The position numbers and the translations under genes were made by a program. This document shows positions 37,891 through 62,010 of a stretch of 64,000 bases of DNA, piece by piece; position 1 is the first letter of the stretch, and every line of letters starts with the position of its first letter. Source of the DNA: Klebsormidium nitens (Eukaryota > Plantae > Klebsormidiophyceae); the NCBI GenBank assembly GCA_000708835.1, contig DF237315.1:8213-72212 (forward strand), written 5' to 3'. The notes under the pieces are model-generated. The model was not told the DNA's origin and did not search any database. It saw only the letters and a list, made by a program, of their open reading frames with translations.

Positions 37891-37973
37891 TTGCTCGCGC
37901 GGGGCGCCTGCTCGATCATTAAGAGACTCACGCGTGTCATCAAGTGCAGGCAAGTGTAGTCGAACAGCTGACC

Positions 37974-39320
37974 ATGGGGGGAAGTCAAGGGGGGCGGAAG
38001 CGCCGTCAAAGGGCGGCACGGAGCTCGAACGAAGCCGGTCAAGCTGGTGACAGCGTCTTTGATGCATTATATCCAGAGCTTCTGGACTGCATCTTGCGGC
38101 GGGCGGCGGTCCACAGCTCGCGGGCTTGGAAACGGTTGGCTCTGGTGAACAAAGCCTTCCAAGACTCTGCACTGCGCTGCTCAGGAACCTTGGTGCTCCG
38201 CCGAGGGGGTCTGCTGACAAAGGGGCCGTTGAAGCTGCGACCTCTGCAGGGCGCAGAGGCGTGTGCTGCCCTTTCCAAAGAGATCGGCGCTCGGCCGAGG
38301 GTTTCGAGGCTGGTCCTGAAGGGGGACGTCAAGCTTGCTGCCGCTTTTTTGCCCGCCATTTTAGAGTTTGGAGCCCGCTGGATCTCCTTGGAGGTAGATG
38401 CTCCTGAAACACACTTTGCGAGATATTTGGATCTACTTCCCAAACTGCAGGGATCTTTGAGACGGCTGAAGATCAGTATCAGACGATACTATAACGGTGA
38501 CAGTGATAGGAGAAGCAACAGCAATGCACGCCTAGACTTAAGCGACGTCTTGAGGGAATTCCCGGACCTCGAGAGCCTCACCATCAAGGGTGGACAACCA
38601 CTGGCACTTCCAGCAAGCAAGCAGGGAAATGATCCGGACGCAGAGGACTGGGAACTGCCAAGCAGCAAGCTTCGTAGTCTAAGCATTAGCGAACCAGGTG
38701 TTTGGGATCTGCAGCAGTTCATCTCCTACCTCCCAGCTTGCGTTTGCAACCTGCGCTTGTTGAGGTTGCATTGTTCCGTCAGCTCTCAACGTATTTGGCA
38801 CCGAGTCATAGCTCGGCACACCACCTTTTTGCCCCTGACTCAACTGCAGACATTGCAACTCGATGTACATTATGACAAGACGCTCTCGAGTGCCCTGCTG
38901 GAGGAGGTCACAGACCGGTGCACGTGCTTGCGCCAGCTTTTCCTTTTCTGCTACCCCCGTGTCTCTTACTCTTCGAGGCCCCCTCTGAAGCTTCCCAACT
39001 TTGCAGAGAAGTGTCCCGAATTGGAGCGCCTTGTAGTCAGTCAAGGCGGATCGGTTAATAGCTCTAGTGAGTTCGTACAGATTCTTCGCGAAAGAGGCGT
39101 AGCTGTACCTTCCAGAGCGCAGCAAAACACCAAGATTCTGATTCTTGAAGACGAAGACAACGAACACGCAGAAAAAGTCGGCAAACGATGCTCCGTCACT
39201 TCTCTCACTTGCATCGGTTTGTTTTGGGCAACTCCAATTAATCTGAACGATCCTGTAAATCGCAAGCGCGCTGTTGGGAAGCCTACAGCTGTTCAGAAGT
39301 GGTGCGACGCTTTTTTGTAG
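37974..39320 (+). CDS. Intronless F-box / LRR (RNI-like) protein with basic N-terminus and C-terminal BRCT-like segment, copy A
   Basis: ATG at 37974; GRKRRQR; F-box-like FDALYPELLDCILRR...LALVNKAF; LxxLxL repeats (LRRLKISI, LESLTI, LRSLSI, LRLLRL, LQTLQL, LRQLFL, LERLVV). Confidence 0.8.
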   Translation: MGGSQGGRKRRQRAARSSNEAGQAGDSVFDALYPELLDCILRRAAVHSSRAWKRLALVNKAFQDSALRCSGTLVLRRGGLLTKGPLKLRPLQGAEACAALSKEIGARPRVSRLVLKGDVKLAAAFLPAILEFGARWISLEVDAPETHFARYLDLLPKLQGSLRRLKISIRRYYNGDSDRRSNSNARLDLSDVLREFPDLESLTIKGGQPLALPASKQGNDPDAEDWELPSSKLRSLSISEPGVWDLQQFISYLPACVCNLRLLRLHCSVSSQRIWHRVIARHTTFLPLTQLQTLQLDVHYDKTLSSALLEEVTDRCTCLRQLFLFCYPRVSYSSRPPLKLPNFAEKCPELERLVVSQGGSVNSSSEFVQILRERGVAVPSRAQQNTKILILEDEDNEHAEKVGKRCSVTSLTCIGLFWATPINLNDPVNRKRAVGKPTAVQKWCDAFL

Positions 39321-40922: not shown

Positions 40923-42577
40923 TCAACCGCTTGGTCCGGAACTAGGGGGAGTGGAAGCCGGCATCACGCATCGCTCGCTGGCTTCGGCAGTCCCTACTGC
41001 ACGGGACATTTTTTGCTTCTCCTCACGCTCGTGCGTTTCAAAAGCTTCCAAGATTGAGCGCTTGCATTCGGCAGCGGTCATGCTTCCGGTCCCAACAAAT
41101 GCCCCGACAATTTCCAAGAGATCGGCTGGAACATTTGATCTTAGCACCTTCATTATGCTGCCGACGCTATAGCGGTGCGGATACATGAGATCCTCGAACA
41201 CCTTGTAAGAAAGAAGGCGGCCTTTGTCGAGAGGCCAGATTTCTTTGAGCTGCGTAAGCCTCGCCTCAACGGCCATCACCGTTTCTAGCTCTAAGCTGCT
41301 GATGTATCGCTGCCCTTCTTCCCGTGCCAAGCCTTGCTCTCCGGCCATGAAACGGACCATGAAGGCGACCGCTTCCGCTGGCTGGAGCTGCAGACGGTCG
41401 CCGGAATGCGGCACCGCTAGACCGCGGCCGAAATTTGGATGGCCAGCAACCCCAAGCACCAGGTGGCCGGCAAGGCATACGAAGCCGGTAATCAGCAGAA
41501 ACCTCCCCTTCCAAACGAAGCCCTCGACATGAAAGTCGTTCACGACATCTGACGTCATCACGTCGTAGCTCTCTGCAGCGTACGCCCCCGGGAAGACTAT
41601 GCTCGGGAGATGGAACGTCTGGCCACCGCAGTATGGACAGGGGCCGGCGTTTCGTGGGCTTGAAACCTCCGCTTTGGTTTCTTCCCCGCTAGATCCCCTC
41701 TGAGACTTGGCCCCTTCTTTCAACCCACTCTGCGATCCGTCACACGCTTTCCCAGCTACGTTCTCTTGGCTGAACTTGGACGTTGCAGCACTGACACGCA
41801 TAATTTTGTCGGCTTCGACTTCGTTCTTCTCGGTCAGAAACGTAGCAGCCCCGGTAACTTCGGCAAGTCCCGAGCTTCTGAAATTCTTGACGACGCCTCT
41901 GCAGCAGAAGATGGGAGGGGGGTTGTATTGGCGCAACAAGCCGCGCTTGCAGGCGGCATCGAAGTGGCAGCACAGACGCGAAACAACAATCTCATCCTCC
42001 ACGGAAAGGAACAGGGCCTTCTTCGACTCCACCCCCTTGCGATATTCCCTGAGTTCTGACTGTACGTGCCCCCGGCCGTAGGTCCAATCGTACTTTGCTT
42101 TCAGGGTCTCAGACTGCAACACTGGCTCAAAGGTCGGGAAGTGAACCCCCGGGCAGTGGACAAGCAGCTTGAACAGCCCCCTCCATCCCCCTGGTGGATC
42201 ACCCGCCCCCTGGTGGCAGTACCCGAGCTCCTCCACCAACCCCCCCGCGTACATCAGGCACAGCTCCTTCCAGGTGACGTCATCCAGGACCTGACGCCAC
42301 TCTTGCAGAATGCTCCCAAGGGGCCAAGGTCCTTAGGATTGGGCCCTAACTTGGCGAAGATTCGTTGCAGGATGTCTGGGCCTAGATAGGGCAGCGCAGT
42401 GCGCGCATCTGCAACGGTACATACTGCTGCACCAGTGTAGTCAGAAACAGCAGAGAGTGAGCAGGGATTTTGAAGGCTGTTTGGTGTGTTGCATGCTGGA
42501 GGGATCTTTGTAGGCGTTACTAACTTGTAAGTTGTCTGGAGGAGAGACGTTGTCACCATATTCAGAGAAGTGTCCAT
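40923..42577 (-). pseudogene. EID1/EDL-like F-box, copy 2; 1-nt deletion within the F-box (~42301)
   Basis: ORF 42577-42254 carries LPYLGPDILQRIF and then leaves frame at tgc aag ag tgg (copy 1 reads tgc aag gag tgg). The rest continues in ORF 42254-40923 with GGWRGLFKLLVHCPG, CPYCGG and FVCLAGH. Confidence 0.75.
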
Positions 42578-42903: not shown

Positions 42904-43087
42904 GGAGAATGAAACAGGACGGTACGTCACGTTTCGATCCCTCTCCAACGCCCTGGACGTCCCTGCTCATTACTGTAAAACTTAGACTTGAACTTCGCAG
43001 GTGGGCGCTTCTCAGACACGCACCATTTAAGGGTCTCTTTTAAGTGCAGGCGTGTTCCTCGTTTCAGCCTGCTCTTTGCGCCCTTCC

Positions 43088-44443
43088 ATGGCGGGTAGTC
43101 ATGTAAGGCGAAAGCGCCGCCAGAGGGCGGCGGCTGAGAGCGCCGCAGCTGATCAACTTGGTGGCGACAGCATCTTTGATACACTTCTGCCGGAGCTTCT
43201 GGACTGCATATTGCGCCGCGCGGCGGGGCAGAGCTCGTTGGCCTGGAAACGCATATCCTTGGTTAACAGGGCCTTCCAAGAGTCTCTTATGCGCTCCTCA
43301 GAAACGTTGGTGATCCGCCGAGGGGGCCCGCTGACTAAGGGCCCGCTGAAGCTGCGACCGCTGCAGGGCGCTGATGCATGCGCTGCTCTTTCAAAGGAGA
43401 TTGACGCAAGGCCGAGGGTTTCGAAGCTGGTCTTGAAGGCGGACGCCAAGACTGTTGCCGCTCATTCGCCCGCCATCTTAGAGTTTGGACCCCGGTGGAT
43501 CTCGGTGGAGGTGGACGTTCCTGAGCCGCACTTCACGGGTGTCATGGAGCTTCTTCCGAACCTGGAGAGCTCCATGAGACGACTGACCATCAGGGTTCGA
43601 CAAAAGGTCACCGGTTACATGTATCAGGGCGGCAAGAGCATCGCACACCTGGACATAGGCGTCGTCGTGCGAGCTTTTCCGGACCTCAAGAGACTCAACA
43701 TCAAAGGAGCATACCTTCTCCAAGTTCCAGCCAGCAAGAACGATGCATTAAACGCTGAGGACTCATTGAGCTGTAAACACAGTAGCCTCAGCATCCGCGA
43801 GCCAGGAGTTTGGGATTTGCAGCAGGGTTTGTCCTACCTACCAGCTTGCCTAACCAGCCTCCGCTCCTTGCGGTTGCAATGCGCGGACGCATTTCCTTTG
43901 CACGGGGTTCGAGCTCAGCATATCTCTTTTGCGCCCCTCATGCAATTGCAGACACTGCGGCTCGATGTGCGTCACAATATGACGCTCTCCAGTTCTCTGT
44001 TGGAGGAGGTCGCAGAGCAGTGCGTTTGCCTGCGGCAGCTTCTAGTTTTCGTCAGCCCGTGTGCCTCCTACGCTTCGAGGCCCTCTGCGAAACTTCCCAA
44101 CTTTGCAGAGAAGTGCCCAGACCTAGAGCGCCTTGTAATCAGTCAAGGCGGGACGGTTGCCAGCCCTGGGTTTGTGGAGCTGTTCCGCGAACACGGCCTA
44201 GCTGTGCCTTCGAAGTATTCGAGCACGCAGCGAGACACCAAGATTGTAATCCTTGAAGACGGAGACACCGAACACGCGGGACGCTGCGGCAAGCGATGCT
44301 CCGTGGCTATTTTCACTTGCATCATCTCAATCTGGGCAGACCCGGTCGATATCAACGATCCTGCGACCCGCAAGCGCGCTGTCGGGAAGCCCGCAACGGT
44401 TAAGAAGTGGTGTGACGCGTTCTGTGAGACAGAAGGCCCTTAA
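43088..44443 (+). CDS. Intronless F-box / LRR protein with C-terminal BRCT-like segment, copy B
   Basis: ATG at 43088; clear paralogue of 37974-39320 (PELLDCILRRAA, LTKGPLKLRPLQGA, EPGVWDLQQ, LPNFAEKCP.LERLV.SQGG, RKRAVGKP..V.KWCDAF). Confidence 0.8.
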   Translation: MAGSHVRRKRRQRAAAESAAADQLGGDSIFDTLLPELLDCILRRAAGQSSLAWKRISLVNRAFQESLMRSSETLVIRRGGPLTKGPLKLRPLQGADACAALSKEIDARPRVSKLVLKADAKTVAAHSPAILEFGPRWISVEVDVPEPHFTGVMELLPNLESSMRRLTIRVRQKVTGYMYQGGKSIAHLDIGVVVRAFPDLKRLNIKGAYLLQVPASKNDALNAEDSLSCKHSSLSIREPGVWDLQQGLSYLPACLTSLRSLRLQCADAFPLHGVRAQHISFAPLMQLQTLRLDVRHNMTLSSSLLEEVAEQCVCLRQLLVFVSPCASYASRPSAKLPNFAEKCPDLERLVISQGGTVASPGFVELFREHGLAVPSKYSSTQRDTKIVILEDGDTEHAGRCGKRCSVAIFTCIISIWADPVDINDPATRKRAVGKPATVKKWCDAFCETEGP

Positions 44444-48600: not shown

Positions 48601-49571
48601 AACAAAGTGAAGGGGCATCATAAATGGATTCATATAACTGGACTTGATGCATCGTCTCCGGCACCAGACATGAATGTTGACTATCTCCGATTAACACGAA
48701 CCGACAAAACTTGGGTAGCAATAGAGCATCCCCATGGGCCGCACCTTGATTGATGAAAAGGAACCGGCTTGAATGCTCTCACTAACAAAGGTTCAAAATA
48801 ATGTCAGACTGATTTTGAGCTGCAGTCAGAAGCTTCTTGTCAGCGGTGATTGAAGTGAAGCAAGTCACAGATCCTAGTGCTTTTGTCAGTGCTGCTTCTG
48901 TCAGAGAGAGCAACTACAGTATCAGGGTCCTCCCTCGGGTACTTTCACAACGAAAGAAACGCAATGTTCATCAGAATCATATCCAAGTCTTCCCTTTTCA
49001 GAAAGAGGCCGTCGTGCTTCTGGAATCACTCAAATAAAGGATGGAAACCAGTTGCAAATGTGTCCAAGGAGTCCTTTGACAAACATGTGTATACCGAGCA
49101 GTTGGACAACACAGTCCGCAAATGAAAGCTTTGGATTTCTTTGTGCAATTGGCAGCCCTACACTGTCACGAAGACAAAAGCAAAAAGTGCACCACCCACC
49201 ATCGGCCGGAAGTGCTCCACGATACCCCGGCACAACGCTTGCACCTTTTCCTCCTTGCCCTCCTCCGCAGCCAACGTCACTGTAAGCACCAGGCTCCGCT
49301 CTTTGTCCTTCCTCTTCGCCGCCTTGACCTCCAAACCCCGTCTTAACCTGTTCACTTCCCTCCTTGCGCTTGTGGCCGGCATTGCTATCCTTCTCCCCAC
49401 ATATGAGCTGCTGTACTGTGAAAGATGAGCCTCTGCAACGGCTTGCCTGCTACATCTCCTGCCAGGCAGCAGTGCCTGACTTCTACAATTCAGTGAAGGA
49501 GTAGAGGGAGTGGCATTCTTGAGCAACGAGGCTTGCCCTGCATTCTGCACTAGACTTTGGCAGGTGGCCAT
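45690..49571 (-). CDS. Probable plastid-targeted protein with ABM (dimeric alpha-beta barrel) domain, 4 exons
   Basis: Exons 49571-49200, 47723-47574, 46580-46496, 45886-45690 splice in frame with GT-AG. Ser/Ala/Arg-rich transit-peptide-like N-terminus ending VKAAK. ABM-like LVLTVTLAAEEGKEEKV...FECSQDAYEPSVYHFWQRY...YAGPEYTKF. Gly-rich C-terminus GPKGEGGLDDATGQGGSGGGASYKQT. Confidence 0.8.
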
Positions 49572-50164
49572 GATTTCTGGCCCTGCTGATGGCAGAAATT
49601 GAGATTGTTAGTTTGCTGCGATTTGCGTGGGGTTTGCGTGCCGCTTTTCCAGGAGAAGAGAGATAATGGGTAATAGAATGATAGAAGCAGAATGTGCCAG
49701 AGACCCAAACCTGTCGGGAACGATTCCGCCGGGCAATCAAGATACAAGGTGGGCTTCTTCCAGGAAAGATACAACTTGGCCGAATGCAGACAAAGCGCAC
49801 CTCTCTCGCTAATTGGAAGCTTGTCGCTTCTTGTATGTAATACCGGCCTAGCACATACGGTATCTCCTCGCCCTTCTCCCTCAGCTCTTCAGTGACTCTG
49901 AGAGAGGCAACTTGTCAAAGTCCAGATATCCAAATCTTGAAGCTTGCAAAATCTTGCACCAGCCAATCAGCTTGCAGCATTTCGAAGCCTTTCGGACAGA
50001 TTCAACCCTTTATGACGATATTTTGAGCTTGTTAGCGTCCGAAACCGAGCGCTTTTGTCCGCAGGCTGGCAGTAGTAGGTATTACAGGTAGGTAGACCGT
50101 GACGTGCTAGCCATGTGCGAGGAGCCAGAGGAGAGTGCTCAGAACTTCCAAGTTTCTGCAAGCA

Positions 50165-52737
50165 ATGCAGTCTGCAGAGCGCACGAGGGTGTTTTCAACA
50201 AGCCTTTTAGTTCGAAGGTCGCGCACCGAAACCCTTCAGAAGGAAGCAGATCGACATGTGGTCGCGCCAATGGCGAGGACCAAGCAGACGGCCAGGAAGT
50301 GCAGTGGTGGCGGAAGCAGGTTCCGAAGATCGCCACCTCCCCTTGTGGCCAGTGACTCACGTCCAACGGGCAAGGCGTACTTAGAAGTGCTCAGGCAGCT
50401 CGAGCAGTCTCAGAGTCCCGTGTCCTCCGAGCACGTGACTGGTGTGGTTGCTGGAGTGATCGAGCAGAGCGTTTCGGACGCCCGCACCGCTCTGCCTGAT
50501 CTGGGCCCCGACCTCCTCCAGCGCATCTTTGCAAAAGTGGGGCCGCATCCAAAGGACTTGGTTCCCCTTGGAGCCGTAAGCAAGGAGTGGCGTCAGGTTC
50601 TGAATGAAAGCACGTGGAAGGAGCTGTGCTTGGAGCATGCGGGGGGTTTGATCGAGGAGCTCGGGTATAGCAACAAGGCGGACGGGCCCCTGGGAGGATG
50701 GGCTGGGTTATACAAAGTCTTAGTGTATTGTCCAGGGTGTCACCTCCCAACATTTGAGCCTGTACTGCAAGCGGAAGCTTTGCGTGAGGACTACAACTGG
50801 ACGCATGGCCGGGGCCATGTGGAAGCAGCTCCAAAGGGGTTTTGCAAGGGAAAGGAAGCGAAAGAGGCTCTGTATCTAGCAACCTCAGATGAGGTGGTCA
50901 TCTCGCGCCTCTGCTCTCATAGACAGGCGGTTGAGATGTGCGATGCAGATGAGGCTTCGGCTCCTCCGATCCTGGCTTGCAGGGGCTTCGTCAAGTCCTT
51001 TGAGAGCTCAAAGCTTGCCCAAATGAGCGGGGCCGCTGCATTCTTGAGCAAGAGCATTGAGGCAGCGGGGGCGGCAAGCGGACCCGCAGAGTCTCCTCGC
51101 AAAGGAAGTGACCTGGAAGGAGCTGCGATCACTTCTAATGTTGAAGGAATGGTAGATAAGGAGGATCTGGATGAGGAAGACTCAAATGCTTTCGACATAG
51201 ATGACTCTGAAGAGTACTCCTTTGGGGACGAGGATGAAGGTAGAAGCGAAGGGGAAGCCAGCTCTGACTTGGAGGAAGCCAAGGAACTAGGGCCGCCATG
51301 TCTTTACTGCAGCAGCCCAATCTTCGCCCTGCCTCGCAAAGCCTTCGATCCTCTTTCGCATGTAGACTACGACGAGCTGCTATCAGAGTCTTTCTGTGAT
51401 GCTTACGACAGGCATGAAGACGGCGATGATTCGGAAGAGGACGAGCGCGATGACACAAAGTTTGTGCTAGCGTCGGGGTTTGTGTGCCTCAGCGGCCACA
51501 TTGTTCTTGGGATGGCTGGATATCCCAAGTTGGTTGCACTTGGAGTGCCGCACTCTGGAGAAGCTCTGAAGCTTCCGCGTCCGCAAGCAATTGAGTTCCT
51601 GCTCAAGTTTTTGGTCGGGAAGCGAGGTTGGGACCACAGGGAGGGGCACCAGTTCATTCAGGGCCTTGGGCTAGATCAGCTGATCCAAATTGATGCCAGG
51701 CTCATGCAAAAGAGGAGGTCTGGCCTGTTGAGGAACGTGGAAAGTCGGACGATTACAGGACTTTCGGTTTTCTCTATAGAGGGCCGGAGTCTCCCGTGGG
51801 CATCGTTGACGTGCTAGAAGCAAAAGTGCCAGCGAGCCTCTTGGAAGTTGTGCAAGACTTTGTCCTGACGGGGAGTCCCGGCTTTGTCGAGTGCGAGCGG
51901 TCCATTTTCGACGCGTTTGAGGCTGTAGACCGGAAAGAGGAAGAGGCGATGGCGTGTAGAAACAGAAGACAGGTGGTGGATGAGGCGTTACGCGGGGCAG
52001 GTGTAGGGTACCCCTTATGGCAGAATCTTCCCAAAGACCTGTCAAACACTCTGAAGGCTCATGTTGAAACAGGGAACCCAAGCCTTGCCGAGTGCAACAG
52101 TCTAATCCTGGAAGAGCGCGAGACGATCAAGCAAGAAGAGGAGCGGACCAGAGCTTTGGAACTCAGGATGAAAACAATCTCTGAGGCGTTGCGGCAAGCA
52201 GGCTTCGACTCCCAGTACCACCTGGTCCCACACCAGCAGTCGCTGAGGGCGTACATAGACGTGAGTCTCACTGCTTTTGTCAATTCACTCAACAAATGAT
52301 TGTATATACCGAAGAGAGACCCGTGCTATTACCTCTGCTGATTGCAGCTTGCTTAGTTTGCATTCGCCTCCAAGCTGTTCTGCACGAATCTGAGCATCAA
52401 GAGCAGCTGCTGCATGTCTTCTCCAAATCTTGTGGTGCCTTGGTTGAGGCAAGGAGTTGGATGGTTTCAATTTGCTGTTTTCATTCATGCCCTAATGATA
52501 CGCAATTGATGGTTGACTTTGACGTGCACTCCTTTTCAGGACCCGGGTTCGATTACTGTGGAGGAGGTCGTTGCGCAGCAAAGAGACGTGCGAGTGCAAA
52601 GCGGCAACTGTATTGGGGTCACAGACGGCAGACTTTGTGGAAACAAGGCGGCTCTTGCCTGCTCTAACAAACGTTGCGGGAACTGCTGCCGCAAACTTGT
52701 AGAACCCTGCCGTACGGCAAAGCATAGGAAGTCCTAG
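50165..52737 (+). CDS. EID1/EDL-like F-box, copy 3, with histone-H3-like N-terminal motif, acidic insert and SHI-like zinc-finger terminal exon; frameshift at ~51710
   Basis: In-frame ATGs at 50165 and 50270. F-box LPDLGPDLLQRIF; GGWAGLYKVLVYCPG; FVCLSGH. After 51710 homology continues in the +1 frame (EVWPVEE...GIVDVL) to donor GAC|gtgagt at 52260. Terminal exon 52540-52737. Confidence 0.75.
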
Positions 52738-53719
52738 GATAGACTCGATTGAAACCCAATAGGAGGTTCTACTCTGCCAGTCTTTCTCGAAGAGAGTCTT
52801 GCTTGGTTGCACTTCATCGACCGACTTACTAGAGCAAGTCAAGTGTGCGGGTGCTTTAAAGTTGTGATGGCAAATCTTGGGCCCATCGTGATTGGCTTGA
52901 TGTACCGTATATTCGGTCGTCAGTGTATACGCTTTAGACAACTTATGATGCGCCCACCTACCATACAAGGCCGAGGATATAACTTAAGCTCATGGCCTGT
53001 CGACGACCTCTGCATGCCTCATCAGTAGCTGCTTTCAGTACGTGAGCTTACGGGCTCAAGTGCATTGCAAATGCACATGACCGTCTTAACACGCATATGT
53101 ATATATTCTAGATGCCACGATGTGCATTGCATATAACTGCCACTTACATAGAGCTAAGCTACAATTATGCTCGACCGTCATAACATATGTGCAACTTTTG
53201 AATTATGCACTGAATGCATTGATTGATGCATATTTACCCACCGCGCTAGACTCGATCACATCCATGCGTATCTCGCGTATGATCTGAGCTTCACCTCACG
53301 ATGACCTTGCATGCTCCGATGTTAGACATAATAGCATGCAATGCGGTGCATGTCGAGCCTTACATACAAGCACGTAGCCGAGCATGTGCACATGCCCGGC
53401 AGCGCCCCTGCCGCTTCCACGATTGTGTCCAAAATAAAGCCAACATAACCACCATTGCAGATAAACTGTGGCCATGAATTAAACCTCAACATTGAGATTG
53501 GATGACCGGCGAACTGAAATAATTGGAACGTCAACTAAAGATATTACTAAATAGCACAAGCATTTCATCGTATGTGGGACGCGTCCATTAATTGCAAGCC
53601 ACTCAACACACTAGAGCCCCAGATTCGCTTGCAACATATAAGATCAAGCTGACCATCTCCCCTTCCTTCTACAATGCGTTGCTCGATTTGGAAGCGGCTG
53701 TGACGAATATGAGCTGGAG

Positions 53720-54060
53720 CAGGTGTGGCCCACCGCCTGCCCCGCACAGCGCGGCTACGTGTCACCCAAAGGATATCAAAGTTGGGCCTTCATTCCAAAG
53801 GTGCTGGTACCCTTAGCCTTCTTCATCCTCTGGTTCGAATTAAAGGGACTGGGAGGCTCGTCAATAGTACCCATGTACAAGCAATCCAGCGACGTTCGTC
53901 GGCGCCTCCGCTACAGGGTTGCCGTCGAGCTCTTCGACTTGAGCTTTCAGCTTCAGCCAGATTGCGCCTTCCGCGGATAGCCCCCCCGGATCATGAGAGC
54001 GGCTATCGCAACGACGATCACCACCACATCTTAGGTGATCTCAACCCAAGTGAACTGTGC
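53720..54060 (+). other. Degenerate coding-like segment duplicated at ~62930-63230
   Basis: Shared strings cc(c/t)atgtaca(a/g)gcaatcca(g/a)cgacgtt, agcccccc, aggtgatctc(a/g)accca(a/g)gtga; peptide LVP.AF.I....G.GG....PMY.QS.DV..RL.YRV in both copies. Confidence 0.6.
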
Positions 54061-59330: not shown

Positions 59331-59589
59331 GTGACTCGCAGTGTCATTGTGAGCGTGAGTCCTCCAAGACGTGGACTTTGTGCAGCACTGCGGTCACTGC
59401 ACTTTTGAAAGTTTCGTCCGCAGCTAAGGTAAAGAGATTCGCTAGGCAGGAGAGATGCACACATCTATCGATGCACAGAGCAGAAAAGACGCAAAATGGG
59501 TTGAGCAATGCAGCCCTCTTGAGCGCACGAGGGGTCCTCGCAATGCTGCAGCCTTTCAAAGGAGATTAGGTAGATTGACAGAGGCCGTG

Positions 59590-62010
59590 CCCTTAGCGGT
59601 GGTGGAAGCAAATTCGTAGACAACCACCTCCTCTTCTGCCCAGCGACTCGCCCAACGGGCAAGGCTTACTTAGAAGTTGCTCAGGCAAGCTCGCAGAGCA
59701 GTCTCAGACGCCCATTGCGTCGGAGCCGGCGGCGGCTGTAGTGGTCAAATGACAGGCATTTCGAACAGCCGCGGATCTTGGCCCCGACCTGCTCCAGCGC
59801 ATCTTTGTGAAACTGGGGCCGCACCCAAAGGACTTGGTCCCCTTGGGAGCTGTCAGTAAGCAGTGGCGTCAGGTTCTCGATGAAAGCACGTGGAAGGAGC
59901 TGTGCTTGAGGTATGCGGGGGGGCTGGTCGAGGACCTGGGGTACGGCCATGGTGCAGACGCCTCCTTCGGCGGAGGATGGGCCGGGTTATATAAATTGTT
60001 AGTGTACTGCCCAGGGTGTCACTTCCCGACATTTGAGCCTGTGCTGCAGTCGGACGCTTTGAGTCTGAACTACGAGTGGATGCATGGCAGGGGCCATGTG
60101 GAAACAGTTGAAAAGGGGTTTTGTAAGGGGAATGAAACGAACGAGGCCCTGCATCTGGCGACACCAGATGAGATTGTCATCTCGCGCCTGTGCTCACATA
60201 TCCAGGCGGTAGAAATGTGCGACATACATGACGAGTCGGCTCTTCCGATCCTGGCTTGCAGAGGCTTCGTGAAGCGCTTTGAGGGCTCAGAGCTTGCCAA
60301 GATGAGCGGGGCCGCCGCGCTTCTGAACCAGAGGAGGAAAGAATCCAAAGCTGAGGGGGCAGCCAGCTCTGATTCGAAGGAGCCCCAGGAGAAGCCACCG
60401 TGTCTTTACTGTGGCAGCCCGACGTTTGCCCTGCCTCGCCAGGCGTTTGACTCCCGCTTCTCAGACTACGACAATATGATGAGGGAGTCTGTCCATGAAG
60501 CTTACGAAAAGCTTGAACAGGGCCATTTCACGGATGAGGCGGACGATGACGAAAACGACTCGGTGTTTACTTTAGGGACGGGCTTTGTGTGCCTCACTGG
60601 CCACATTGTGCTTGGGATGGCGGGATACCCCAAGCTAGTTGAAAGCGTACTGCCGCAATCTGGAGAGAGTCTGAAGCTTCAGCGTCCGCAAGCGGTGGAC
60701 TTCTTGCTGAAATTTGTGGTTGGGGGTGACACTCTGGAACGCGAGGAGGGGCACGAATTCGTGCAAGGCTTGGGGTTAGATCAGCTGATTCAGATTGAGG
60801 CCCGGCTTGCGCGACTGAAGAAAGTCTGGCCGGTGGAGGAGAATAGGGAGTCTGAAAAGGAGAACGAGGGGCCTGCCGATGCAAACCAGGCCAAAAAAGA
60901 TCCTGAGAAATCCCTTGAGGACAATGAGGAGATTAGATACAAAACTTTTGGATACATGTATCTGAGAGGCGACTCTCTTGCGGGAATTGTAGATCTGCTA
61001 GGAGCAAGCGTGCCAGCCGATCTCTTGAAAGCCTTGCAGGATTTCGTTCTGACAGGGAGTACGAACCTTGCGGAGTGTGAGCGTTTGGTTTTAGAGGAGT
61101 TCGAAACCCAGAGGTGCAAGAAGGAGGAGGATAAGGCCCGTAGGTTCAAAAGTGCTGCGGCAGAGGAGGCGTTGCGTGAGGCAGGTTTTAAGCACCCCTT
61201 TCTGGATCTTCCAAGCAGCCTTTCGACTATGCTGAAGGCTTTTGTAGAAACGGGTTTTCCAAGCCTTGCAGAGTACGAACGGCTGATTTTGGAAGAGCGC
61301 GAAGTGCATCAGCAGCAAGAGGAGCGGAAGAAAGTTTTGGAACTTAGAAAGAACACAGTCTATCTGGCATTGCAGCAGGCTGGCTTTACCCCCCCAATGG
61401 TTCCGCACCCGCAGTCGCTGAGTGCTTACATCGGGGTGAGTGTGCCACTCATTCAGAATGTTGTTCTGAGTACCCTGTTTGTCGAACTCGAAGCAAGTAA
61501 CCTGGTTTCAAACTCGAAGCACAGGCCCGCACTGCTAAACGTGTTGATTGCAGCTTGCTAATTATGCAATTCAAGTTTGCGGTCGCTCTCGAAGTTGTCC
61601 TGCTGTTCAGATTGCATCCGAATCATTGCTACCTGCCTATCTTGGTCGTTCAGTGCCTTGCCTGAAGCAAGCATCTGAGTTGTTTGGACCGATGCTTGCT
61701 GCTTAACAAAGTAACCCAGCAGTAGTTGTCTATGGCTGACTAGACATGCACGTTTTTGCAGGATTCCAGTGCAATCACTTTGGAGGAGGTCGTTGCGCAG
61801 CAAAAGAGCGCGCAAGTGCAGAGCGTAAACGGAGTGGAGCTTGCTGCACCACGAACGAGTGCACAAGAGCAGAGCCACAAATGCGCAGTGGTCACAGACG
61901 GCAAAGGCTGTAAGCATCCGGCGGCTAAAGGGTGCTCCAATGGAGGGTGCGGGCCTTGCTGTCGTAAAGCTGCGGAACCCTGCCGGTTAGGAAAGCACAG
62001 GAAGACCTAG
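59590..62010 (+). pseudogene. EID1/EDL-like F-box, copy 4; disrupted 5' end, intact body and zinc-finger terminal exon (61762-62010)
   Basis: DLGPDLLQRIFVKLGP frame is open to donor GGG|gtgagt at 61435. Upstream there are frameshifts relative to copy 3 and an in-frame TGA at ~59748. The ORF-track start at 59807 is GTG. Confidence 0.65.

Follow-up and report, generated by a model that had tools for sequence, protein, structure and literature searches.

An H3-like tail conserved at the start of EID1-like F-box proteins of Klebsormidium

Fourteen codons beginning at position 50270 of a 64,000-nucleotide stretch of Klebsormidium nitens DNA (forward strand of contig DF237315.1, positions 8,213 to 72,212, assembly GCA_000708835.1; the whole stretch is called the window, and coordinates refer to it) reproduce histone H3's N-terminal tail at the front of an F-box protein. 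These codons, ATG GCG AGG ACC AAG CAG ACG GCC AGG AAG TGC AGT GGT GGC (50270-50311, forward strand), are translated as MARTKQTARKCSGG and belong to copy 3 of the EDL genes of the window (annotated protein P0001, 'F-box family protein'). Nine consecutive residues after the Met match H3 in register with that initiator, and the full run of H3-like codons (50270..50323, forward strand, MARTKQTARKCSGGGSRF) also keeps G12 and G13 and carries Cys in place of S10. The reading frame of the tail (open reading frame, ORF, 50135-51817) is shared with the Pfam F-box-like domain at 50492..50632 of the same strand (residues 75-121 counted from the Met at 50270), in which the ratio of non-synonymous to synonymous change (omega, dN/dS, from Nei-Gojobori counts throughout) was 0.04-0.10. 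An H3 N-tail mimic in frame with an F-box at this position had been proposed in a preliminary description of the DNA and was borne out by the sequence itself, by the ORF, by the PF12937 match and by searches of the PDB that retrieved H3. The motif of copy 3 is thus confirmed as a real, in-register copy of the H3 tail fronting an F-box protein, with a likeness far beyond chance. On balance, the 14 codons at 50270 probably represent one member of an inherited, selection-maintained H3 tail that opens the EID1-like F-box proteins of one Klebsormidium clade, predicted receptors of SCF (Skp1-Cullin-F-box) ubiquitin ligases, and that would dock into H3-tail pockets.

Intact genes with an H3-like start numbered six (copy 3 and five others), all within the EID1-like F-box clade, and came from two organisms, K. 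nitens and the source of Logan sample SRR23617307; the latter was treated as a second Klebsormidium-like organism because a CPR5_C neighbour is shared and dS values were 0.45-0.85. Three groups were distinguished. Group A comprises copy 3, P0003 (K. nitens, same contig, approximately 3.1 kb beyond the end of the window) and P0002 (SRR23617307), all of which start MARTKQTARKCSGGGSR[F/Y]R. Group B, with the start MARERITGRKTTGGKAP, comprises P0004 (K. nitens, a different contig) and P0005 (SRR23617307), which together read MARERIT[G/A]RKTTGGKAPLH[K/R]L. Group C is a single gene of SRR23617307 with a GC..AG intron, represented by P0039 and P0010 and starting MGRVKQTARKGSGG. All three groups retain H3 residues R2, T6, R8, K9, G12 and G13; positions 1 and 7 are each occupied by a small residue, and position 11 by Ser or Thr. 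What the groups have in common is thus the H3K9 neighbourhood and the extreme N-terminus. Of the modifiable residues R2, K4 and K9, groups A and C have all three and group B has R2 and K9. The determinants on which the peptide centers are R2/K4 and T6-A7-R8-K9.

Searches of PDB sequences with the first 40-60 residues of these proteins retrieved essentially only H3 N-terminal tails. Thus, the single copy 3 sequence matched with E 0.04 (alignment MARTKQTARK-GG), a profile of the N-termini of groups A and C matched with E 6.7e-5, and group B was aligned to H3 residues 1-24, reaching residue 34 in full-length H3 chains. Word-based searches with residues 1-40 of P0003 or P0004 returned family members only and were uninformative on other H3-tailed proteins. 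The resemblance is confined to the tail. A histone fold (alphaN, alpha1-alpha3) was not detected, the HMMER alignments ending at H3 residue 20-34, and past approximately residue 17 (the likeness ends by 17-22) local alignment to H3 was no better than alignment to shuffled sequence (P 0.2-0.8). The segment RPTGKAYLEVLRQL, considered as a derivative of H3 alphaN (RPGTVALREIR...), was rejected on the same grounds, its alignment lying within the same range of P against shuffles and outside the reach of HMMER. The H3 query of the shuffle and tblastn tests served only for negative tests and for leads.

That each group keeps H3 residues lost by the others (T3, K4 and Q5 in group A; T11, K14, A15, P16, L20 and A21 in group B) argues for descent from a longer, genuine H3 tail as opposed to convergence, and an H3 coding sequence, judged at the protein level, is the most likely origin of the tail. 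The preliminary description had also derived the tail from an H3 gene, on the strength of a shifted-frame reading, RKQVPKIAT, thought to echo H3; the origin stands by virtue of the different residues retained per group, while the shifted-frame argument falls, P0002 reading REQVPTTTSS at that place and the resemblance being no greater than that of shuffles. No H3 gene was found by tblastn in the window and the fetched loci, and the Ser11 codon is AGT in group A as opposed to TCC in group C. In a maximum-likelihood tree, group A was sister to the clade of copies 1 and 2 (support 100/99), with groups B and C outside this pair and within a clade supported at 97/96. Because the tail-bearing groups B and C lie outside the grouping of A with copies 1 and 2, the tail is ancestral to the clade, kept three times and lost once, in the lineage of copies 1 and 2, and the tree places it before the split of the three paralogue groups. 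The start of copy 1 (P0007; 37564..37599, reverse strand, MQRTAQLRNPCS) reads as a decayed tail of the group A type that keeps R2, T3, Q5, C10 and S11, and Cys10 likewise persists both within group A and among its decayed relatives. The echo of the tail that had been claimed for copy 2 is present as sequence (MVTTSLLQTTYK) but is not convincingly H3-like.

Purifying selection on the tail was evident in both groups for which pairs of genes could be compared. Thus, codons 1-17 of group A showed no non-synonymous difference over 40 sites in any of the three pairs, at a gene-wide dN of 0.19-0.22, whereas approximately 7.6 changes were expected (binomial P ~2e-4 per pair) and 1-3 synonymous changes were present. 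At the nucleotide level, the tail of copy 3 (50270-50323) was identical at 52 of 54 positions to P0003 and likewise to P0002, as compared with about 60-70% identity in the flanks. The tail of group B had a dS of 0.69, a dN of 0.027 and an omega of 0.04, as opposed to an omega of 1.0-1.6 in the next 27 codons, and its sole replacement, G7 to A7, goes towards H3. A neutral control was provided by the pseudogenised 5' part of copy 4 (59430..59806, forward strand), in which the start codon is deleted and indels break the frame; its tail codons were 61% identical to those of copy 3, as against 96% in intact genes, in keeping with the decayed remnant described for this copy beforehand. The coding sequences thus indicate that the tail is under purifying selection at the level of amino acids and decays in copies that have lost function. 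Neutral capture, for which a motif no more conserved than its flanks would have spoken, did not hold up, since the tail was far more conserved than the flanking sequence in orthologues and paralogues alike. That the motif resembles H3 by chance, or is a captured H3 fragment evolving neutrally, as its shortness might suggest, is hardly credible in view of nine consecutive identities in register with the Met, the occurrence in six genes of two organisms, the deficiency of non-synonymous change and the confinement of decay to pseudogenised copies.

Whether the tail forms the N-terminus of the protein was judged from five genes. Four of these (P0003, P0002, P0004 and P0005) have an in-frame stop upstream of the tail ATG and no further ATG of that frame in the interval, and no Met occurs between the tail and the F-box. 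Given these upstream stops and the absence of a Met ahead of the constrained F-box, AUG initiation in the four genes would take place at the tail ATG. The second residue of the tailed proteins is Ala or Gly, either of which permits removal of the initiator Met, and such removal, as inferred from sequence, would expose an H3-like free N-terminus. This terminus is assured by the upstream stops in the four genes and is not assured for copy 3, which has an upstream ATG.

The setting of the tail in the protein was examined with an AlphaFold2 model of P0003 (37-sequence alignment, mean predicted local distance difference test, pLDDT, 73). Residues 1-29 were modeled as disordered (pLDDT 31-38 over residues 1-30), followed by a short helix at residues 34-47 (TGKAYLEALKQL), a second disordered stretch at residues 48-76 and the F-box helices at residues 80-131. 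The core, modeled with confidence and bearing a nearly invariant CxxC...C..GH pattern, occupied residues 143-270 and 345-500, interrupted by an acidic, disordered loop at residues 275-326, and was followed by helical repeats at residues 551-721 and by a Cys-rich C-terminal end of low confidence. The model thus predicts that the tail is carried on a disordered N-terminal arm approximately 60 residues ahead of the F-box. The long Asp/Glu tract reported in the preliminary description is present in copy 3 at 51155..51274 (forward strand), with 20 Asp or Glu in the 40 residues from 51155, and is a predicted disordered loop within the conserved core. The short helix coincides with a conserved linker motif, TGKAYLEVLRQL, encoded at 50366..50407 (forward strand) and predicted to lie between two disordered stretches; its counterpart in group C is PTGQEYLDAV. 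Across the 42 nucleotides that encode this motif, copy 3, P0002 of the second organism and the pseudogenised copy 4 were identical at 41 positions, with a dS of 0 as compared with approximately 0.73 gene-wide.

Membership of the family was established from the F-box and from the region that follows it. PF12937 matched residues 80-121 of copy 3 with 28.6 bits, above the gathering cut-off of 24.3, and P0003, P0004, P0002 and P0007 with 28-33 bits; in a Pfam scan of the copy 3 protein, the F-box was the sole match. Alignment of A3 with the land-plant protein P0088 by hhalign gave 97.4% probability and E 1.2e-11 over 154 columns that span the F-box and the core, and comparison of the EID1 core motifs (GxW..LGKLL.YC.GC, GH, DxxYVSxxCxH and FRGxxKxF) showed homology beyond the F-box. 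The Pfam entry EID2_C (PF27778) appeared as a 'faint' precomputed match, which hmmscan at E<=1 did not return. These comparisons indicate that the family is homologous to the EID1/EDL F-box proteins of land plants. It is a small family, with 84 matches among 1.84 billion representatives. In P0003, the CxxC ... C..GH pattern (residues 345-415, corresponding to approximately 51290-51500 of the window) was nearly invariant across 37 family members, which suggests a zinc site in the conserved core. No meaningful match to a solved structure was obtained, either by Foldseek of the full model against the PDB (best E 1.1) or by VIA-align wide with the core domain (best Z 4.0).

Transcription of copy 3 was followed with contigs of four transcriptome runs, from four studies, placed on 49400-53900. 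The contigs were taken as RNA because the GT..AG joint 52260>52540 is present, in all four runs. Exon 1 (50158..52260, forward strand) was covered without mismatches or gaps by contig pieces running from 50158, 50162 or 50182 to 50325 and from 50296 to 52260, while contig depth was zero at 50004-50154. A transcript over 50270, for which the preliminary description had asked, is therefore present among the contigs. The break between the pieces, at 50296-50325, falls in sequence shared with P0003, and one contig runs on into the leader of P0003 itself, indicating that P0003 is also expressed. The sole intron supported by RNA is 52261..52539 (forward strand, GT..AG, 279 nt). The coding part of the last exon (52540..52737, forward strand) encodes the Cys-rich C-terminus and ends at the stop 52735-52737, with contigs ending at 52846-52895; this Cys-rich end (C..CSN..CG.CCRK...PCR..KHRK) is common to P0003, P0004 and P0006, and its coding part 52540-52734 resembles the DUF702 zinc finger of SHI/STY proteins weakly (Pfam, E 0.54).

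P0001 is 100% identical to copy 3 over the shared part but is annotated to start at an upstream ATG (50165..50167, forward strand), the in-frame ATG to which the preliminary description had drawn attention. This ATG is in frame with, and open to, the tail ATG in copy 3 alone and adds 35 codons. It is present on mRNA contigs in two of the three K. nitens runs, 3-7 nt from the assembled 5' ends. Its position is conserved in P0003 and P0002, where it opens upstream ORFs of 4 and 11 codons, and this conservation in the three group A genes suggests a regulatory upstream ORF. A further ATG, out of frame and 14-16 nt ahead of the tail ATG, is common to copy 3 and P0002. Further downstream, copy 3 differs from P0002 by a 1-nt deletion at 51717..51718 (forward strand), confirmed by the RNA contigs, which shifts the frame such that the ORF from 50270 stops at 51815-51817 and is truncated after the core domain. 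The conserved C-terminal coding region that follows (51721..52260, forward strand) is out of frame with the N-terminal part, yet remains open to the stop at 52735-52737, with an omega of 0.27 against P0002. In P0001 the frame is rescued by an annotated 155-nt GT..AG intron, 51627-51781, which was absent from the contigs of all four runs; the main mRNA would thus carry the frameshift. The open downstream frame and its omega argue that the frameshift is recent or is bypassed in a minor isoform.

These features raise a serious possibility, somewhat short of probable and confined to copy 3, that in this gene the motif is buried by a start at 50165, that the gene is decaying, that its frameshifted mRNA gives a truncated product or one targeted by nonsense-mediated decay, and that the tail is here a relic. 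Such a view is favored by the upstream ATG on the contigs, which has A at -3, by the deletion confirmed in RNA and by the failure of the rescuing intron to appear. Against it, the upstream ATG lies within approximately 3-10 nt of the assembled 5' ends, one run starts downstream of it, and cap-proximal AUGs are poorly used; the context of the tail ATG is the better of the two, having G at +4 as well as A at -3; P0002 and P0003 do not preserve the 35 upstream codons as coding sequence; and omega is relaxed neither on the copy 3 branch (approximately 0.29) nor after the frameshift (0.27). Copy 3 is a transcribed but atypical, derived member of its group, and the public model of the locus needs revision with respect to the start codon, the non-supported intron and the frameshift.

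With regard to the family as a whole, the explanation preferred here is that removal of Met, permitted by Ala or Gly at residue 2, would expose an H3-like free N-terminus; that this terminus would dock in the H3-tail pockets of readers, writers or erasers, with contacts centered on R2/K4 and K9; and that docking would either tie chromatin proteins to the SCF ligase as substrates or place the receptor under the control of histone-modifying enzymes. Several observations weigh against this explanation. The sample consists of two organisms, the use of start codons is read from sequence in every member, and the argument for the N-terminus covers AUG starts in the sequenced upstream DNA. K4 is lost in group B, where it is now Arg, and S10 is replaced in every group (by Cys, Thr or Gly), so that an S10-phospho switch is not conserved. 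The dS of the group A tail is itself low (0.10-0.34 as compared with 0.73-0.85 gene-wide), which leaves room for some nucleotide-level constraint or for gene conversion. The upstream ATG found on copy 3 transcripts and the truncation of the copy 3 ORF count on the same side. Finally, function as a histone mimic is inferred from conservation, and any function, nuclear import for example, would conserve ancestral and thus H3-like residues.

The tail could instead be a generic basic N-terminal signal (for nuclear localisation or other targeting, or a stability element) in which the H3 likeness is historical and no histone-binding machinery is involved. The tail is indeed basic and disordered, without acidic residues up to D28, and the freezing of ancestral residues by any selected function, together with the Arg at K4 in group B, would suit such a signal. 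Targeting signals, however, tolerate exchanges of Lys and Arg and do not need T6, A7, G12 and G13, whereas group A shows no amino-acid change in 17 codons at a gene-wide dS of approximately 0.8, the single change in group B is towards H3 and the positions common to all groups belong to the H3K9 site. This alternative is accordingly considered unlikely. An improbable one is that the tail serves as a pseudosubstrate or regulatory handle, either folding back against the acidic loop or the substrate pocket of the same protein or being modified at K4/K9 or ubiquitylated, and so switching the ligase on or off. The long Asp/Glu loop inside the conserved core would offer a site for such folding, and automethylated histone-mimic motifs are known in histone methyltransferases, SetDB1 being an example (preprint 10.1101/2025.01.21.634156). 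The acidic tract is, however, much shorter in group B, which keeps the tail, and the AlphaFold2 model docks the tail nowhere (pLDDT below 40), although this is weak evidence.

Among known systems, the closest in kind is PAF15 (PCLAF), the H3-like N-terminus of which binds the PHD finger of UHRF1 with a dissociation constant of 2.2 uM as compared with 1.5 uM for H3 (PMC7060239). Like the tailed F-box proteins, PAF15 is an endogenous non-histone protein with a post-Met N-terminus that imitates H3 A1-R2-T3-K4, and in PAF15 this imitation is read with H3-like affinity and is coupled to ubiquitylation (PMC7060239). PAF15 differs in being the substrate of a reader-bearing RING E3 ligase, whereas the mimic described here is carried by the substrate receptor of the E3 ligase itself. 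The match to H3 is also loose in PAF15 (VRTK...), whereas residues 1-9 are identical to H3 in the Klebsormidium tail, and the two proteins are unrelated in sequence. Internal histone mimics of the ARKS/ARKT type in G9a, LIG1 and influenza NS1 are used by histone writers and readers. The mimics of G9a, SetDB1, LIG1 and NS1 resemble the tail in being short H3K9- or K4-like peptides in non-histone proteins (for SetDB1, preprint 10.1101/2025.01.21.634156). These motifs, for the most part convergent, span 4-6 residues and lie internally or at the C-terminus, whereas the Klebsormidium tail is N-terminal, 13-22 residues long, in register with the Met and apparently derived from an H3 gene. With H3 itself, the likeness extends to residues 1-9, 12 and 13 in group A and to approximately residue 21 in group B; there is no histone fold, the remainder being an F-box protein.

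The land-plant EID1/EDL proteins share the F-box and the following core and are named 'EID1-like F-box protein 2/3' or 'phytochrome A-associated F-box protein'. They differ in being approximately 250-350 residues long and in having no acidic loop, no helical repeats towards the C-terminus and no Cys-rich end, and their starts (MILTKQYRC...) are at most a faint echo of the tail. Land-plant EDL starts include MILTKQYRC and MSLPRKQARQTS. Two post hoc observations were made in these proteins (P0088, P0094 and P0080): the EDL2 start MILTKQYRC places TKQ in H3 register, and EDL3 of Cryptomeria has MSLPRKQARQTSKA just before the F-box. The EDL2 and EDL3 sequences might be remnants of that H3-like tail.

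Elsewhere in the window, paralogous genes of approximately 460 residues were noted at 37944-39320 and 43052-44443 (both forward strand), each head-to-head with EDL copy 1 or copy 2; neither gave a Pfam match. The arrangement at copies 1 and 2 suggests duplication of a two-gene cassette. One nucleotide is deleted in the F-box of copy 2 (42290-42310, reverse strand), which reads GAFCKSGVRSW... in place of GAVCKEWRQVL, because of which the annotated product starts downstream and is without an F-box.

Full-text literature searches returned no paper describing an H3 tail on an F-box protein, nor any on EID1-like proteins of Klebsormidium. Histone mimicry is a known kind of phenomenon; an in-register, H3-derived and selected N-terminal tail on an SCF receptor is a new form of it. 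Histone mimicry has been described chiefly in pathogens and in a small number of animal proteins, usually as motifs of 4-6 residues, and the present case is a 13-22 residue selected H3 tail located at the extreme N-terminus of the substrate receptor of a ubiquitin ligase, in an alga closely related to land plants. A bolder version, put forward only tentatively, is that the tail is a working decoy histone, by which H3K9/K4 readers, writers or erasers are brought in to be ubiquitylated or by which K9/K4 marks placed on the receptor direct the ligase to chromatin, and that it may have been ancestral to EID1/EDL proteins throughout the streptophytes, with MILTKQYRC as a relic. If true, this would be an endogenous, mimic-based mode of targeting not described for any E3 receptor. 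The preservation of an H3 tail on an F-box family suggests that the ubiquitin system is connected, in a manner not yet described, with histone readers or modifiers. EID1-like F-box proteins are regulators of light and abscisic acid signalling in plants. Should the tail engage histone readers or modifiers, it would constitute a natural, genetically tractable decoy histone wired directly to protein degradation and would offer a new angle on the original role of EID1-like F-box proteins.

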